Assembly: GCA_043228905.1 (NCBI GenBank)
Contig: JBHGNT010000010.1
Span: 20,460,001 to 20,524,000 of the forward strand
Reading direction: 5' to 3'
DNA from: Azolla caroliniana
Lineage: Eukaryota > Plantae > Polypodiophyta
Length of the DNA stretch: 64,000 nt
The translations under genes and the position numbers were made by a program. This document shows positions 50,860-61,945 of this stretch, piece by piece. The notes under the pieces were generated by a model, which saw nothing but the letters and a program-made list of their open reading frames with translations, ran no database searches and was not told where the DNA came from. Position 1 is the first letter of the stretch. Each line of letters begins with the position of its first letter.

Positions 50860-51580
50860 AGTGAAGCTTTAAAATACTTCGAAATGATGCAAAAAGAGAG
50901 CATCTCTTATGATACCATTAACTTTATTTGCATCTTCAAAGCATGTGACATATAGCAAGAGATGTGGAAATGGGCATAAAAATTCATGTAAAGATTGTTT
51001 CTAATTGCTTTCTATTCAATCGCACTTGGAAATGCACTAGTGGATATGTATGCCAACTGTGGTTTGAGTATTAAATCACAAAATGTACTTGATGAGCTTC
51101 CACTCCGAGATGTAGTTTCTTGGTTCATATGTATGCTACATGTGGTATGCTTGAGAAAGCAAGAAAAGTATTGGAAGAGCTTCATCTTTGAGATATGTTG
51201 TCTTGGTCAGCCCTTATTGTTGGCTATGCTCAACAAGGACAAACACATGAAGCCCTAGAGTGTCTCAAACACAGGGAAAGTGAGGGCATATCTCTTGACA
51301 ACATAACATTAGTATGTGTGATGAGTGCACGTGGTCACATTGGGCTCGTAAACGATGCCAAAATGCCTTTTCAGATTATGACCACAAAATATTGTATTTC
51401 TCCAAACTTAGAGCATCTTAATTGCATGGTTGTAGTATTTGGATGTGGGGGATAATATGATAAAGATATTTCAGTGATCAAGGTAATGCCATTTTTTGAG
51501 TATTCAGTCATATGGATTTCATTATTGGGTGCTTCTAGGAAATGGGGAAATGAGAAGCTTCGGAGATTATCTTTGCAATA
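50860..51580 (+). pseudogene. PLS-class PPR pseudogene running into an E-domain-like end
   Basis: Frameshifted motifs: LGNALVDMYANCG..SQNVLDELPLRDVVSW, SWSALIVGYAQQGQTHEALECL, ISPNLEHLNCMVVVFG, WISLLGASRKWGN. Confidence 0.85.
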
Positions 51581-53520: not shown

Positions 53521-54114
53521 GGCATGTCCCCATGTACAACTGTTCTTGGTAATGCTTTGGGAGATATGTATGGCCGTGGCAGCCTAAGAGCAGTTAACAA
53601 GGTAAAAACATGTGTTGAAGTATCGTGTAAATTGCTTTAGACATAATATAAATCATAGTTGGCCAAAAAAAGAAGAAAAAAGAAGTTGTCACAATGCCTA
53701 TAACACCTTGGTTGAAGCGAGATACCAATGTTATCAACATGTTTGTTGTTTGTTTGCATCATTATTCCCATTATTCAATAGAGGTTTATGACCTTCCAGT
53801 TATGAAAGGAAGTTTGGTTGGGTCATGTGTGGTCTGTCTACTTGGTGGTGGTGCAATCAAACTGCAAATATCATAAGGTCCTGTAGCTTCTCTACATTCT
53901 TCTCTTATGCCACAAAATCGATGTTCCCGTCACAACATATATATGTATCTCGGAGAGACTACTCCAATTTGTCATTCCAAAATATCTTGGACGAAAATAT
54001 GCACTATTTTTCTCAATATTCTGTTGAGCCATGCAAGAAAATGGACTCCATTTTGGCTCCCTAATGGAAAGGAGAGGGAAAACCTACTTCTAATTATCAT
54101 TACAAAAACCCTTC

Positions 54115-54245
54115 CATTCTTCTTCTTCTTCTTCTTCTTCTTCTTTATATTTATTATTATTACAAATACAAATATTATTATTATTACTACAATTTACAAT
54201 TTACAATTTACGATTATTATTATTATTATTATTATTACTGTTATT
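54115..54245. repeat. (TTC)n and (ATT)n trinucleotide microsatellites upstream of H2A.X
   Basis: Direct reading. Confidence 0.9.
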
Positions 54246-54342
54246 GTTTTTATATTTTTTGAAGGAGCGGCGGTGAAATTTTATTAATTTTCGAAAATAA
54301 GCGGAAGCAGAGTAAGTGGAGACTGCAAGCACAGTGGCGGCT

Positions 54343-55886
54343 ATGGCGATGGTGAGCGATGAAGAACCCGAAGGCGAAGAAGAACGAACGGGAGATGAAG
54401 GGTCTGAGCAAGAAGAATCAGGAGAAGAAGAAGAAGGAGGAGGAGAAGGAGGAGGAGGAGGAGGAGGAGCAGCAGTAACGAAAGGACGAGAAAAGAAAGA
54501 GGAAGGAAAACCGAAGAAGAGAGAAGGAAGGAAGGAATCGAAAGGAGCGAAGGTTAGAAAACAATCGGAAGGAGCAGGCGAAAATGGAGGTGAAGAAGAC
54601 GAAGACGAAGACGAAGGTGAAGATGAAGATGAAGAAGAAGAAGAAGAAGAAGGAGAAGAAGAAGTAGCTACTGCACCTTCCCCTGCAGCGAAGGTTGTTC
54701 CTGCAACCATACCTTCGCATGGGGGAGGAAGAGGGAGAGCCGTGGGGAAAAGAGCCTCTGCTTCTGTGTCAAGATCGACTAAGGCGGGTCTCCAGTTCCC
54801 TGTAAGCAGGATCGCAAGGTACCTGAAGGCAGGGCGATATGCAGAGAGGGTCGGATCGGGAGCCCCTGTCTACCTGGCGGCGGTCCTAGAATACCTAGCT
54901 GCAGAGGTGAGGCATAAGCTTAGGTCTATCAATCCATGGATATATCTCTGTCTCCATTCCTCTCTTCTTTCGTCATTGTTTTCCCATCATCTTCTTTGAT
55001 CATATTCATCACTGTCATCATCATCATCCATCTCCATCTCCATCTCCATCTTCATCTCCATCTTCAGACTTCTTTCATCATCTAACTTCTTTCATCATCT
55101 AACTTCTTTATTATCACCATCTATCTCTTCATCTTTCTGCCTTATCATTATATTTGTCTTATATCATCTTATGCATCGTCAATGGTCTTCTTCATTCTTT
55201 AGTAATCAATCATCGTTATAACGTGTGAATTTTGAGTGGTCGATACATGTTTCTTATTCACCATCTGTTCTTTAGGGTTTATGTAAACTGCTAAAATCCT
55301 CATAGGCGTTCTTTTGAGCAAGGTTATTTTTATAAGTTGTTCGGGTTTCTATGATTATATAGGGCTTGTTCTTATTCTAGGGTTTCATGGCACCACCGTA
55401 TTGAAAACAGTTGTGATTGGTTCAAGAAGAAAACCATTCGGTTCGATCTGGGCCATTAAAGCCTAGGCTTGGACGGTTTGGACAGGACGAAAAATATCCT
55501 CTTCTTTGATCCTAAGGGTCTCTTAAAATACTCACACCCGGTCATGGTCATGGTCATGGTCATCGGTGCGATATGTCCTTGGATGGGCATAATGCCTAGT
55601 GTCTAGTGACCACCCTAGTGCCTAAATGTCCTTTCTCTTTCTCTTGAAGGTATTGGAGCTTGCCGGGAATGCGGCACGGGACAACAAGAAGAGCCGTATC
55701 ATACCCCGACACATCCAACTAGCAATCCGTAATGACGAGGAGTTGGCTAAGCTACTCGGCCATGTCACCATCGCCAACGGGGGGGTCATCCCTAACATTC
55801 ATTCCGTGCTCTTGCCCAAAACCCAAACCTCTTCTTCGTCCAAGAGCTCGGGCCTCGATCCCATCAGCCAATCCCAAGAGTTTTGA
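54343..55886 (+). CDS. H2AX: Histone H2A.X (C-terminal SQEF) with a long predicted acidic N-terminal extension; exons 54343-54906 and 55650-55886 (266 aa)
   Basis: Histone fold [46 protein letters not shown]|[37 protein letters not shown]...LLPK, ending SQSQEF*. The intron is at the usual plant H2A position. The only in-frame ATGs before the fold are 54343 and 54349; the H2A.X identity is firm, the start less so. Confidence 0.93.
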
Positions 55887-58502
55887 TTTTTTTACATCGA
55901 TGATACACCCTGTGATAGTGATCGGATCGGAACTTTCTCCGCCCGTGTGATCGGATCGGAACTTGGATTGGAACATTCTCCCCCCATATGAGCTTATATG
56001 TAGAGTGATTATGTATGATGAGAGGTAATTAGTATGAATTTGCTAGCATGACCTCTTAGAGAGGAAACCCATTGTTTTGTTATTTTTGAAAGCCTCATCC
56101 GAAGAAACTAATATGTAAAGACCGAAAACTTTCCGAAGGAAGGAAAACAAAATTATGATGATAGGTAGTACAAAAGTCTTTTGACCGTCAGGAGTCTGGA
56201 ATCTGCCTCCCTTTTTATCGAGGGCACATTATGTTTTATATATTTCTAGTGGCAAATGTCACATCTTACTTCACATGAAGAGGTAGAATTGTTTGAGAAA
56301 ATAGGTTTGGTCATTTCTAGTTTCTGTTTTGTCACAAGATAAATTACATTTTGAGCATCTAAAGTCCTTTGTCTAGTGTTGATCTTGGAAAAAATTGTTG
56401 GGAACCATTGTTGAATGTCATTGTCTAGTTGGAAGGTAGCAAAGTATCTTTACACCTGCCACAATATCTCGTTGGTGGTAAATTGTAATTGCTAGGATAC
56501 TCATGCCTGGTATATCAATGGGTGCGAATGAAAAATGGATAAATATAGTCAATAGTTTAGGAAAATGGTCATTTCCAAGTTGTAAATGTTTGTGATGGAA
56601 AGATCAAATTTATGAAAATATGAAAATATTGGAAAACACAAGCTTTACTATGGACAGATATGCAGATGTCTGATGAAGAATTTGCAAATGATTGCAACTA
56701 CGGATAGGTGCATATGATTTTCTGTGCAGTGTTCTAAAGTTTTCACACTTGTGGTGAAATTATGTTTAGGAGTTCCGCAAGGTCTCCAAAGGAGTCTAAT
56801 AAGTCCTTGGATTGTGACAACGAAAACTATTTTCTAGGAGATCAATAAGTCATTTTGGTACTAGGCATGCTAGTCATGGATTGCAAGTGAGGCATATTTA
56901 TGTATTAAATCACTTTATGCAAACATGTGAGAACAAATCACTAATACTAAATCCAACAAATCTAAGTATTTTCAATGCATTCACTATTAGGCTCCTATAC
57001 AATATAACGTGAACAAAAAGAGTGATGAGTATGTATCATAATCACACCATCGACTAATTACTATTGTATTAAGGAAATGGTAGATATATAATAAAAACAA
57101 TAAATGGTAGAAATGATTCCATTGTAGCCAGAGGCCATTTATAATCAAAATGATTACTTTGAAAATTTTGAACTTCAAAAGTCATACATATTTTTTTTCT
57201 TTTTTGCTAAGAAAAATGAATTACATTGTAACATAGGTAGGCCCCAAAATAAGTGAAGCCAAATGACACGCGGCATAATGGTCATTGGAGAACTATTCTT
57301 GGTGCACTATCATACAAGGGGGAAAATGAATTATGACAAGGTAGGGTTGAATTTTCAACAAGATCGGCTACACATATCCATTGTTTTTGCATGTAATAAA
57401 TATTGCTTAAAGACAATCTCTGCCTATTGTGTGCAACTTCTTGGAGATTTTTGGCACATGGATGTTTTGAACCATGCACATGGTTTGCTAAAGTCTCATA
57501 AAACATACAATACAAGATGCATGGCCGTCGTGGTGAGTCCCACACATACATGGGGGTATCATTTGGAACTTTTGAGACTCATAAACCCTTTTGCAATTTG
57601 CCTCATCTCTTTGATGGTGATGGATTCCTTTCAACCCTATTATCCCTACCACCATGGAGCACTCAGCAAGTGATATGGTTTGACGAATAGATTGCGGAAA
57701 ATGAGATGGTACAACAAGTTTGTTTGGGTGGCATACTAATATGCATGTGTTTTATGTTGGTAATTGCAAATGTTGTAAAGAGAGTACAAGATTGGCTCGT
57801 ATCTTTCTCGTAGAGATTCAATTTCCAACCCGACTCTTTGATTGTTCGAACATATTGAACAATTTGTGCATTTTATGCCCTAAAAAATATGGCTAAGTTC
57901 AACTTAGAACCCTCTCTATCATCAAAGAAGAGCCTAACCACTAGTGCCCAGGTGCCCTCATGTCTTAGGTTACTTTCGTAAGCATTTTTAAGTAAGTCCA
58001 TGATCTTCATCATGTGTACTAACTCATTTTTCATGTGTTCGTTCATTATTCATGCAATTTAAAAATATAGTGTAATGCACATGGAGGATCATGTGTAGTT
58101 CCTTACTGCGTTGGTTACCACAACATTAGCAAGAAATATAATTTAACATTATAACCTTGCCAATCTATGACCATTAAGGAGGCAAACGTACCTTCCAACT
58201 TTTCAAATCGATCTTCTCGTGATCGATATCTACGCACCTGGCGCATCAATGCAAAATCCCACATGTGCAGTCGATGGGTTAACACCTTAGCCGATATAAT
58301 CAATCCCCTTTAGATTGGTCGGCAATTGCAAAGTGCGGCCACTATGTTGGCTTGCGAGGAAGCTATGCCTATATAAGGGATGCTTGACTTGATGGGAAAC
58401 AACACATGCTAAGCACCACCCAATTGCAAGTGTGGAGACACTTCAATGGATAGTACATACATACATACATAACAACATACGGACAGGCATGCATACATAA
58501 GG

Positions 58503-58523
58503 TACATACATATACATATACAT

Positions 58524-58571
<48 letters not shown>

Positions 58572-58602
58572 CATACATATACACATACATATACATATAC
58601 AC

Positions 58603-58661
<59 letters not shown>

Positions 58662-58698
58662 CATACACATACATATACACATACACATACATATACAC

Positions 58699-58746
<48 letters not shown>
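58503..58746. repeat. (ATATAC)n hexanucleotide microsatellite upstream of the 14-3-3 gene
   Basis: Direct reading; source of the MY/CI spurious ORFs. Confidence 0.97.
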
Positions 58747-58747
<1 letters not shown>

Positions 58748-58980
58748 ATAAATATATGTACATTATACTGTATACATATATCAATATGTATATATAATTT
58801 GTACATATATAATAATGCATTGCACCCTTTCTTCTTCCTCCCTTTTTCTTTTCTGCTTTATTTCTTTCCACCAGCGAAGCAGAAGCAGAAGCAGAAGCAG
58901 CAGAAGAAGACAACGAAGTAGAAGACGCAAGAAGAAAGAGAAAAGGAGATACTGTGTCTGTTGCAGCTCTCGCCATCGCC

Positions 58981-61945
58981 ATGACGAACGAGAAGGAGAG
59001 GGAGGCGCATGTTTATTTGGCCAAGGTCGCTGAGCAAGCTGAGCGTTATGAAGGTACTCTCTCTCTCTCTCCCCTCTCTTGACTGTTTCTTCTTGTTCTT
59101 TTGATCCTACCTTCTTCATCCTCCGTTAAGTGCACTAGAAGATCTCTAGTTTCCTCCATGCTTTTCTTGACCTGAATGTCGAAGTCCAGAGTTGTCAAGC
59201 TTTCTGCGGACATTTTCTGACCTGGATGACTTGAAGAGAAGACTCTCTAAAATTTATTGGCTAAAATGTTGGGAAAACAGGATATTATTTGGGGTTTATT
59301 TCATGTAAATGTTAAGAAAACGAAATATCTCAAAGTTCAGAGTCTCTTTGGCCTGAATGTTAAGAAAAAAATACAGATCGAAAATTTCCCTGCTTCTTTT
59401 TGGCTTAAATTTTCAGAAGTTGAAAGTTTTCAAATTTTATAAGCATTCCATCATCTGAAGATTGGGAAGAAGAAATATTTCGTAGAGATTTTTTACTTCA
59501 AGAAGAAGATGACCAAAAAGCTCCAAAATGTTCTGCATCCTTTTCTGACTTAAAAGTTTTGAAGAAGAAACGTTTTAGATAGTTGGCGATTTCTTTGATG
59601 TAAATGCGAACATCATGAAAGTTGTAAACTTCGGAAGTTTTTCTTTGATCCAAAACATTGAGAATAGAATTTTTTTGATTAATTCATCAATTACTAACCT
59701 ATATGCTACATTTCTGAACAGAAATGGTGGAGTTCATGAAGAACGTGGCTAAACTTGATGTTGAACTCACTGTTGAAGAAAGGAATCTTCTCTCAGTGGG
59801 ATATAAGAATGTTATTGGTGCTAGAAGAGCTTCTTGGCGCATATTATCTTCCATCGAGCAGAAGGAAGAGAGTAAAGGAAATGAACAACACGTGCAACAG
59901 ATAAAAGATTATCGCAAGAAAGTAGAAGGAGAACTTACCGATATCTGTAATGATATCTTAACTGTGATTGATGAGCATCTTTTACCATCATCTAGCTCGG
60001 GCGAGTTTGCTGTCTTCTACCATAAGATGTATGCCAAATTGTTTTTTCGGTCTTTGTTTTATTATCATGAGATGTATACTATCGGCTTGTTCTTCTGTCC
60101 TAAGATATCTTTGAATCATAGTTATATTTATGATTAGAATACGTTTTAGAATGCTCTGAAGTATTTAACATGTATTCTACATTTTAGAACCGTTATTTAA
60201 AATATCCACGTATTTATTGTAGTCCAAACGTCTACATATTTAAGTATTTTTATGTTCTGTAAAAAAAAGTTCTGAAAAAAAAATGTAAAAATAAAAAATT
60301 GGCCGAATTTCAGTGGTAGATGCAAGGCAAATATAAGAAGGGTGAATACTCTGAAAATACTTGGCGTCAATATTCTACAATATTCTATGCATATTGTATG
60401 CTAAGCATTTTACAACTGTGATTAGAATGTTCTGATATGTTATCATGATATGTATTATCAAGCTAGATATTACAATTTTCCATACGGTGTAGTGTATCCA
60501 TGTTGTCATCTTTCTGTAATATTGCTGTTGTCAATGGATAGTTCTGATATGCATTGTCTTCTCCATTTTTTTAGGAAAGGTGATTATTACAGGTATTTAT
60601 CTGAGTTCAAAACTGGAGAGGAAAGGAAACTAGCTGCTGATCAATCTCTGGCATCTTATCAAGTATGTTTTGAAGTCGTAAATTGTTCATAATTTTGTTC
60701 AATATAAATGATCGAATAAATTAATATATTATGAAAGCATAAACAATATAAATATTGGGTGAATGTTTAACTTCCTGTAATGTGCTTATTTTATATTATT
60801 ATTACCACTGCATTCTTGAAATTTCGTAAAATTTATTTGATCTTTCAAATTTTATGATGGAAATGAAAGGGCAAAACCATGATAAATAGTTAGTGAATAT
60901 TTCCACCCCATTTTGTTTGCATGGCCTTGGAATTTACCATGGAAGAATGTGTTAGTTAAGTTTGGTTCATGTGTTAGTTAACTTCCTGTAATGTTCTTGA
61001 CGTAGATCAGAGGTGTGATGTTGATCTTTTGGCAACTCTGAACACTGAAATCAGCATGATGCTGCTCTCTTTGTGCTGTTTTATGTGTTCATTTTTTTGT
61101 TCTGTTAATTTCTGTGTTTATGGAAGGCTCTAGTAATTGTATGTGATCATTTTTGTTCAGACAGAATAATATCTAAACCATAGCCATGAGAATATTTGCT
61201 AATATTATAGATATATATAAGACAATTTTACTAATCGTGGACCCACTGGTTTGGCAGGCTGCATCTACCACTGCATCTACTGAATTATCTCCTACACATC
61301 CAATTAGGCTTGGCTTGGCATTGAATTTTTCAGTGTTCTATTATGAAATTGTCAACTCACCAGAGCTGTAAGCTGATTCGTGAATATTGAAGTACTATAA
61401 AAGTTAAAATTTATGGGGAGAGCTCCTGAAACTGTGTTTTTCTTATATACCCCAATAACTATGATTTTCGTTGTTTGCCCAAACACCCAGGTTCGATCCC
61501 CAAAAGAGAGAAAAGGGGGATGAATTGACCTTTCAATTGCTCAATATAGTGAATATGATTTCTTGGCTGGGTGTTTACTGAGGGCGTTTGGGAAACAATG
61601 AAAAGTAACTAGTGTTTGTGAGGTAAAGAAGAATTTCTCATTTCACATCCAAATGTTGATTGTTTATGTCAGGGCATGTCAGCTTGCAAAACAAGCATTT
61701 GATGAGGCTATTGCTGAACTTGATACGCTCAGTGAGGACTCTTATAAAGACAGCACTCTGATTATGCAACTCTTGAGAGATAATCTCACTCTTTGGACAT
61801 CGGATCTGCAAGATGATGGAGGTTTGTGATTCAAATCTCATGCATTTGATTTTTTTGCATTTAAGTTCTAGGTGGTATTGAGTGTTTTTGTTTTATGCAT
61901 TCAGGTGATGACATAATCAAAGGTGAAGAGAAAGAGGTAATTTAA
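58981..61945 (+). CDS. 14-3-3 protein, epsilon-type exon structure; exons 58981-59053, 59722-60028, 60575-60662, 61258-61367, 61673-61821, 61905-61945
   Basis: Spliced product: [24 protein letters not shown]|EMVEFMK...[20 protein letters not shown]...YHKM|[11 protein letters not shown]...|[19 protein letters not shown]...|[22 protein letters not shown]...|[13 protein letters not shown]. Confidence 0.96.

Follow-up and report, generated by a model that had tools for sequence, protein, structure and literature searches.

A candidate extended H2A.X histone of the fern Azolla caroliniana with a 125-codon acidic N-terminal arm encoded by purine-rich repeats

A 64,000-nucleotide stretch of the Azolla caroliniana genome (GenBank assembly GCA_043228905.1, contig JBHGNT010000010.1, positions 20,460,001 to 20,524,000 of the forward strand; hereafter the window, with all coordinates counted from its first nucleotide) carries a two-exon, fern-type gene of the H2A.X histone variant, encoded on the plus strand by 188 codons at 54343-54906 and a further 78 codons plus a stop codon at 55650-55886. 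The resulting model of 266 amino acid residues, which reproduces the length proposed in a first-pass annotation made from the sequence letters, comprises three portions. The first is a purine-rich N-terminal extension of 125 codons (54343-54717; hereafter the arm), the second is the remainder of exon 1 (54718-54906), which encodes the H2A.X N-tail and the start of the histone fold, and the third is the coding part of exon 2 (55650-55886), which encodes the remaining fold, the H2A C-terminal docking domain and the terminal SQEF motif (55872-55883), followed by the stop codon. The subject of this study is whether the arm belongs to the histone.

Searches and structure predictions were run exon by exon, and the charges, lengths, masses and codon counts reported for the complete model are the values of the individual pieces summed. 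The translation of exon 2 matched PF16211, the H2A C-terminal docking domain, at 64.4 bits against a Pfam cut-off of 20, and terminated in ..ISQSQEF immediately before the stop codon, in keeping with the SQ(E/D)-plus-hydrophobic quartet that forms the last four residues of H2A.X proteins. Both exon pieces also matched PF00125, with scores of 20.9 and 23.1 bits that lie under the cut-off of 26.4 solely because the intron divides the fold between them. The translations of the exons were 75-95% identical to H2A and H2A.X proteins, and the acidic-patch and L1/docking residues of nucleosomal H2A, including NDEEL, could all be read from them. Judged by its fold, docking domain and SQEF terminus, the gene is assigned to H2A.X, as had been claimed at first pass from the fold and the SQEF, and both phosphorylation of the SQ serine by ATM/ATR after DNA breaks and incorporation into nucleosomes are predicted for its product.

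The RNA and DNA evidence utilized here derives from contigs assembled from public sequencing runs, which attest to presence only, from which transcript ends cannot be read and in which rare variants are dropped. Two of these runs, X6 and X8, had been guessed to be RNA and were found to behave as such, in that both carried a GT..AG exon-exon joint (54904>55648, cut +2) and X6 had no depth over the intron; the DNA run X3 covered the intron and was without the joint. Exon 1 accordingly ends at GAG|gtgagg (54906|54907), followed by a T-rich GT..AG intron (54907-55649; 39% T), whilst a contig of X6 extends the 3' untranslated region from 55887 to at least 56121. Upstream of the gene and on the same strand, the region 54117-54262 holds a pyrimidine patch of the (TTC)n type (54117-54145), microsatellites rich in AT (54151-54253) and the TATA-like sequence ttatatttttt (54250-54260), and is presumed to be the core promoter.

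The closest named proteins were the H2A.X-type histones of the ferns Adiantum (P0051) and Ceratopteris (P0135 and P0136), which are 140-142 residues in length, begin with MAG.. or MAAG.. and have the SQSQEF ending in common with the window gene. Plant and fern H2A.X proteins, those of Arabidopsis (HTA3 and HTA5) included, also resemble the window gene in the H2A fold and docking domain, in the residues of the acidic patch, in the position of the intron after ..LEYLAAE and in the tail motif GGGRG(R/K), and in the other fern proteins an SQ likewise stands before the terminal SQEF. The resemblance does not extend to the N-terminus. H2A.X proteins are characterized by a short basic N-tail that starts a few residues before GRGK (5-10 residues from the initiator methionine in the plant and fern proteins) and by a total length of approximately 135-145 residues, whereas the window gene has no in-frame AUG at that position, its reading frame continues 125 codons further upstream and its model reaches 266 residues.

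The arm had been described at first pass as modular, and five blocks were confirmed. These consist of an acidic block (residues 1-30, 54343-54432, net charge -14), a Gly-rich block (31-45, 54433-54477), a basic block (46-75, 54478-54567, net charge +9), a second and more strongly acidic block (76-107, 54568-54663, net charge -24) and an Ala/Pro linker (108-125, 54664-54717). The earlier estimate of about 45 acidic residues was likewise close to the 46 counted here (39 Glu and 7 Asp), which are accompanied by 24 Gly, 11 Lys and 5 Arg; the arm has a net charge of -30 and a pI of 4.1, and the complete model, with a mass of approximately 28 kDa, a net charge of -20. With a mean hydropathy of 0.31, relative to a boundary of 0.50 at its charge, the arm is by composition probably disordered. 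The lack of structure in the arm in a single-sequence AlphaFold prediction for the exon 1 product (mean pLDDT 49) carries no weight, the histone part having scored low as well. At the DNA level the arm is a triplet-periodic GAA/GGA repeat with interruptions, and 54342-54681 is the sole 300-nt stretch within the 64-kb window that is at least 85% purine or pyrimidine. An origin of the arm as a duplicated H2A tail was considered and rejected, with no similarity to the Adiantum H2A.X being found and the internal repeats being only of the triplet-periodic, low-complexity kind.

Only two in-frame ATGs precede the histone fold. They are located at 54343 (gcggctATGGCG) and 54349, upstream of the usual start by 125 codons, in agreement with the first-pass annotation. 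These ATGs (54343-54351, translated M-A-M) both have a G at position -3 and a G at position +4, consistent with the good context that had been ascribed to the first of them. Frame 0 is free of stops from 54316 to 54906, the other two frames contain three and eight stops over 54352-54717, and in dinucleotide-preserving shuffles frame 0 was open in 1.1%, and any frame in 3.3%, of cases. All other ATGs up to 54839 lie in frame +1 and are closed by nearby stops. Five of them fall within 54359-54667 (at 54359, 54395, 54584, 54623 and 54629), in short frames that stop at 54476 and 54665, and would be expected to trap ribosomes that had skipped 54343 and 54349. A further one, ATG 54719, directly precedes a run of five G residues (G5; 54721-54725, the two together spanning 54719-54725), stands one base outside the histone frame and reaches a stop at 54803; it is possibly a relic of the ancestral start. 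Ribosomes missing the first two AUGs would consequently face six out-of-frame AUGs before the tail. The candidate starts in the histone frame are ATG 54343, ATG 54349, GTG 54352, ACG 54388, ACG 54478 and ATA 54709, with GTG 54742 located behind the conserved tail motif. Under the scanning model ribosomes normally initiate at the first AUG in a strong context, and since the first AUGs here are strong, are in the histone frame and have no stop between them and the fold, the default product of scanning would be the 266-residue H2A.X. On that model, the main product of arm-bearing transcripts is most likely the long protein initiated at 54343 or 54349.

Expression had been named at first pass as a test of the model, and spliced mRNA was recovered in the contigs of the public runs, with RNA reaching upstream as far as 54344. 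The RNA contigs of X6 were collinear with the genome over 54344-54437, over 54505-54623 and from approximately 54641 through the splice to 56121, and a single 282-nt contig of X8 corresponded to 54366-54647 with the same repeat lengths as the genome. Contig depth over the arm (26.5 and 21.9 in X6, and 6.6 in X8) was not lower than that over the histone exons (12.4; 7-9), and the AUG at 54349, at least, lies within the RNA. RNA contigs covering 53950-54343 were absent from the RNA runs, hence the transcript probably starts shortly upstream of 54344. It was also found that close relatives carry the arm stretch in RNA. The sequence of 54673-54904, including the G5 run, was identical and free of gaps in the DNA run X3 and the RNA runs X6 and X11, which originate from three studies. 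The absence of the usual start is therefore real, being neither an assembly error nor corrected at the RNA level. Repair of the frame in RNA was accordingly rejected as a candidate, the RNA contigs being the same as the genome over both 54366-54647 and 54673-54904.

Selection on the histone frame was assessed with related sequences, foremost an 854-nt contig from the European Nucleotide Archive (ENA; L001), which was reached via the protein database and aligns from 54701 with a mean column identity of 87% overall. This contig has GGAGG in place of the G5 run, and its ATG is equally out of the histone frame. Between the window and L001, 13 sites differ over 54703-54906, ten of which are silent and three of which are replacements (dS 0.20, dN 0.021; dN/dS approximately 0.1 over the shared part of exon 1), whilst the same 13 sites read in the other two frames would yield 10 and 13 replacements, respectively. 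All five differences within 54705-54741 (54705, 54723, 54735, 54738 and 54741) are silent third-position changes, an outcome with a chance of approximately 0.004 if there were no coding constraint, and what lends it weight is that the peptide preserved is the universal GRG(K/R) tail motif. A more distant relative, contained in a contig of Joint Genome Institute (JGI) metagenome 3300047537 (L002, exon 2 at 241-477), gave a dS of 1.7 and a dN of 0.035 for exon 2. Despite this saturated silent divergence, L002 retains the unusual Ser-rich C-terminal tail ahead of SQSQEF, and this tail is judged from the comparison to be conserved in the lineage. The substitution patterns indicate that the gene is under purifying selection, and has been so after the frame change that the window and L001 have in common. 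Purifying selection in the histone frame upstream of the usual start argues, in turn, that translation in this frame must begin at or before approximately 54709-54718.

Several lesser observations were made on these relatives. Both L002 and a third contig, L003, hold the intron and exon 2 only, and a scan of JGI metagenomes for exon 1 in relatives further removed yielded, among the matches listed, none but generic H2A genes. The protein P0121 (L003:743-1120), which represents this exon in the same species, continues past the TGA stop (..SQEFWFLYNDD..) and is no translation under table 11; this read-through is evidently an annotation artefact, the metagenome gene having been called under a code in which TGA=Trp. 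The H2A.X intron contains (CATCTC)7, a 17-nt repeat and (GGTCAT)4, and its repeat region at approximately 55020-55070 aligns poorly with L001.

Taken together, the reading frame, the RNA and the selection in the histone frame lead us to favour, with moderate confidence, a real and lineage-specific extended H2A.X, in which the long protein is the main product of an expressed gene that lacks a usable AUG where one would normally stand. The mRNA would carry a purine-rich stretch of 375 nt, and scanning ribosomes starting at 54343 or 54349 would produce the normal tail, fold and SQEF behind a 125-residue arm. The extended architecture put forward at first pass has thus gained support from the transcripts, the frame and the selection, whilst its arm is without homologues, belongs to no chaperone family and has the codon use of a microsatellite. 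The statement that no H2A of this architecture had been described stood up to both literature and protein searches. A literature search found no paper on an H2A-family histone with a long acidic N-terminal arm, a result that does not prove absence.

A number of points weigh against this reading. Homologues of the arm were not found among 5.8 billion proteins, nor by phmmer against 1.84 billion representatives (0 matches), and the annotated fern H2A.X proteins are approximately 140 residues in length. In the arm, GAA codons outnumber GAG by 37 to 2 and GGA accounts for 19 of the 24 Gly codons, whilst the histone part uses GAG six times and GAA once; this bias, unlike that of the histone part, argues that the arm is young sequence derived from microsatellite-type repeats. 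The selection figures cover 54703-54906 and exon 2, the arm-bearing relatives being nearly identical and L001 beginning only at 54701, and the density of the five silent changes near the tail motif (12.8%) is close to that of the intron, which makes this test moderate and not strong. In addition, L001 has an in-frame ATG (gctATGg, L001:42-44), found in that lineage only, where the window has GTG (gccGTGg, 54742-54744), eight codons behind GGGRGR. With respect to the transcripts, the arm never lies within one single contig, its continuity being a tiling across runs of nearly identical organisms, and the 5' end of the X6 contig falls at 54344, directly behind Illumina adapter letters and one base inside ATG 54343. 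Both of the adapter-bordered X6 contig ends (54344 and 54505) are ends of short-insert fragments, and 54344 is only a possible 5' end of the transcript. Finally, the 266-residue product is a prediction from the DNA, the RNA contigs and the codon comparison.

Additional searches returned nothing that resembled the arm. No Pfam family was detected in the first 125 codons at E values of up to 1, the folded chaperone cores (Nucleoplasmin and NAP) being among those absent, a search of the ESM Atlas gave no usable match for the arm, and exact look-ups of four reading frames of the window, on both strands, were absent from the collection. With exon 1 as the query only H2A folds were retrieved, and the matches at 50% coverage were tandem H2A-H2A fusions such as P0008.

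It could be argued that the purine-rich stretch is a mere 5' leader, that a histone of approximately 130-145 residues is produced from a non-AUG start (AUA 54709, or GUG 54742 with its good context) or from shorter transcripts starting within or downstream of the stretch, and that the long frame is incidental. A precedent exists within the window, where the neighbouring 14-3-3 gene has a GAA-type purine-rich leader (58876-58950) of (GCAGAA)n/(GAA)n composition behind a CT-rich patch, a layout like that upstream of the H2A.X gene. This leader shows a source of such purine-rich sequence and keeps the possibility of a plain leader alive; it is, however, only approximately 75 nt long, has no AUG and contains a TAG stop, whereas the H2A.X stretch extends over 340 nt, has two strong AUGs and is free of stops in the histone frame. 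The repeat-type codon use of the stretch and its lack of homologues would also be expected of a leader, near-cognate codons are available in frame at ATA 54709 and GTG 54742 (gccGTGg), the latter being where L001 has its ATG, and the ends of transcripts are unreadable from the contigs. Nevertheless, a non-coding leader should have either no in-frame AUG or an in-frame stop, and what was found is two strong in-frame AUGs and 125 stop-free codons, in a frame that is open in only 1% of shuffles. With six out-of-frame AUGs following the two in frame, scanning could hardly get to 54709 or 54742, and the contig depth on the stretch does not fall below that of the histone exons. As a near-cognate start codon, AUA ranks with the weakest, and initiation at 54742 would exclude GGGRGR from the protein, although the four changes within this motif are all silent. 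We therefore regard translation from a downstream non-AUG start as unlikely, without dismissing it.

A less probable alternative is that the gene, though expressed, is a redundant copy or one in decay, with a second H2A.X of normal start performing the work and the long product being noise or degraded. The usual start has indeed been lost, and X8 contains a second H2A.X-like transcript, represented by a 124-nt contig over 54751-54873 with seven differences, the four listed (54804, 54834, 54835 and 54843) all being silent in the histone frame. The organism of X8 therefore has an expressed H2A.X paralogue or divergent allele, and the group has more than a single copy or allele. Against decay, the frame change shared with L001 has been followed by purifying selection (dN/dS approximately 0.1 in exon 1, and a dN of 0.035 at a dS of 1.7 in exon 2), and the intron with its splice sites, the SQEF and the frame have all stayed intact. 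None of the relaxed selection, broken frame, lost intron or silence that identify a pseudogene was observed, given that the intron is spliced and the gene expressed, and we consider this explanation improbable.

The first-pass annotation had itself pointed to a splice that would remove the arm, from ATG GCG ATG|gtgagc (54351) to aag|GTT (54694), and thereby yield a near-normal protein. The donor matches the consensus, the join would be in frame and a minor form might have been lost from contigs, which drop rare variants. No joint removing the arm, 54351>54694 included, was present in the contigs of four runs, however, and these continue across both sites without a splice, at a depth like that of the exons, whereas the true intron has zero depth in X6. 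Plant introns are U-rich; the would-be intron consists of GAA repeats with 6% T, in comparison with 39% T in the real one, and splicing at the AG that comes first behind the pyrimidine run (54687-54688) would put the product out of frame. Such a spliced form is considered very improbable. The remaining explanation, likewise anticipated at first pass as an indel, is a sequencing or assembly error concealing a sixth G at 54721, in which case ATG 54719 would start a normal MGGGRGR protein; although one added G would restore a textbook start, this is refuted as far as the public data reach and can practically be set aside, as G5 was confirmed gap-free in X3, X6 and X11, the GGAGG of L001 stands in the same frame relation and the changes behind ATG 54719 are silent only in the histone frame.

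For the extended H2A.X that we prefer, two routes to the arm can be envisaged. In the first, a GAA/GGA-rich 5' leader would have been captured after loss of the old start, of which traces may persist, as one extra G at 54721 would yield MGGGRGR and a former ATG may have decayed into ATA 54709. In the second, GGA (Gly) repeats would have grown in frame inside the stretch encoding the tail, downstream of an ancestral ATGGCG start, with G>A changes converting GGA into GAA. The ATGGCG at 54343 gives M-A, and MAG.. or MAAG.. is how the H2A.X proteins of other ferns begin. Both routes fit. The origin from a purine-rich leader proposed at first pass is thus plausible, the 14-3-3 neighbour having a similar though shorter leader, but it shares this standing with expansion of the tail in frame.

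If translated, the arm would exit where the H2A N-tail leaves the nucleosome beside the DNA, and would be expected to act by charge (net -30, with the central +9 patch). It could shield basic surfaces of the H2A.X-H2B dimer, as the acidic tracts of chaperones do, it could repel both the DNA and adjacent nucleosomes and so give looser or faster-exchanging nucleosomes, or it could change access to, and the reading of, the N-tail. We hold a charge-based function of the arm with low confidence, a chaperone-like role is speculation, and the arm may equally be a tolerated passenger. That this fern lineage makes use of a net-negative core histone, the DNA-damage-signalling variant H2A.X, whose acidic-basic-acidic arm functions as a built-in chaperone or DNA-repelling element or gates repair factors on the N-tail, is a tentative proposal that we consider rather doubtful.

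Glu/Asp tracts located beside basic patches bind or shield basic histone surfaces in nucleoplasmin, NAP1, the tails of FACT, the tail of HMGB1 and prothymosin alpha. The arm resembles these proteins in having long acidic tracts next to a basic patch, a likeness that is compositional only, as they have no sequence or domain relation to it and are separate proteins instead of parts of a histone. The precedent closest in architecture is Arabidopsis H2B.8, a plant variant of a core histone whose long, disordered N-terminal region changes the state of chromatin (PMC9668745, PMC11351261). Both are land-plant core histones with a long low-complexity N-terminal region, whilst H2B.8 belongs to the H2B family and has a region that is kept throughout the flowering plants and compacts chromatin by phase separation; the arm of the window gene is strongly acidic and apparently young. 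Within the H2A family, the N-terminus of Arabidopsis H2A.X is required for repair and its N-tail recruits TONSOKU, which binds the tails of H2A.X and H2A.W, and this binding is blocked in H2A.Z by a basic-and-acidic (BAR) motif of the N-tail (PMC12710692). On this precedent, a mixture of acidic and basic residues within the N-tail of an H2A can switch which repair factor reads it; the BAR motif differs in being short and inside the normal tail of another variant, whereas the arm is an addition of 125 residues.

Few known proteins are as conserved or as basic as the core histones. If the arm is translated and enters chromatin, it would constitute a natural experiment on the negative charge tolerated at the point where the H2A tail exits the nucleosome, and would test whether chaperone-like acidic tracts work in cis. 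It would also bear on the reading of the H2A.X N-tail, the recruiter of TONSOKU in Arabidopsis (PMC12710692), and would provide a clean and datable birth of protein sequence from triplet repeats in or beside a highly constrained gene. Were the arm untranslated, the gene would still be unusual, as a constrained histone gene relying on non-AUG or otherwise unconventional initiation.

The remaining features of the neighbourhood lie on either side of the H2A.X gene. Downstream, the 14-3-3 gene occupies 58826-60140 on the plus strand, with exon 1 coding from ATG 58981 to 59053, an intron extending to 59721 and exon 2 thereafter. Upstream, the open reading frames at 50995-51455 contain sequence like that of pentatricopeptide repeat (PPR) proteins (..LGNALVDMYANCG.. 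and ..SWSALIVGYAQQGQTHEALECL..), split across frames, and this segment looks like a fragmentary or decayed PPR gene of the PLS class. Between the H2A.X and 14-3-3 genes, a microsatellite of the (TATACA)n/(TACA)n type extends for approximately 440 bp (58369-58810).

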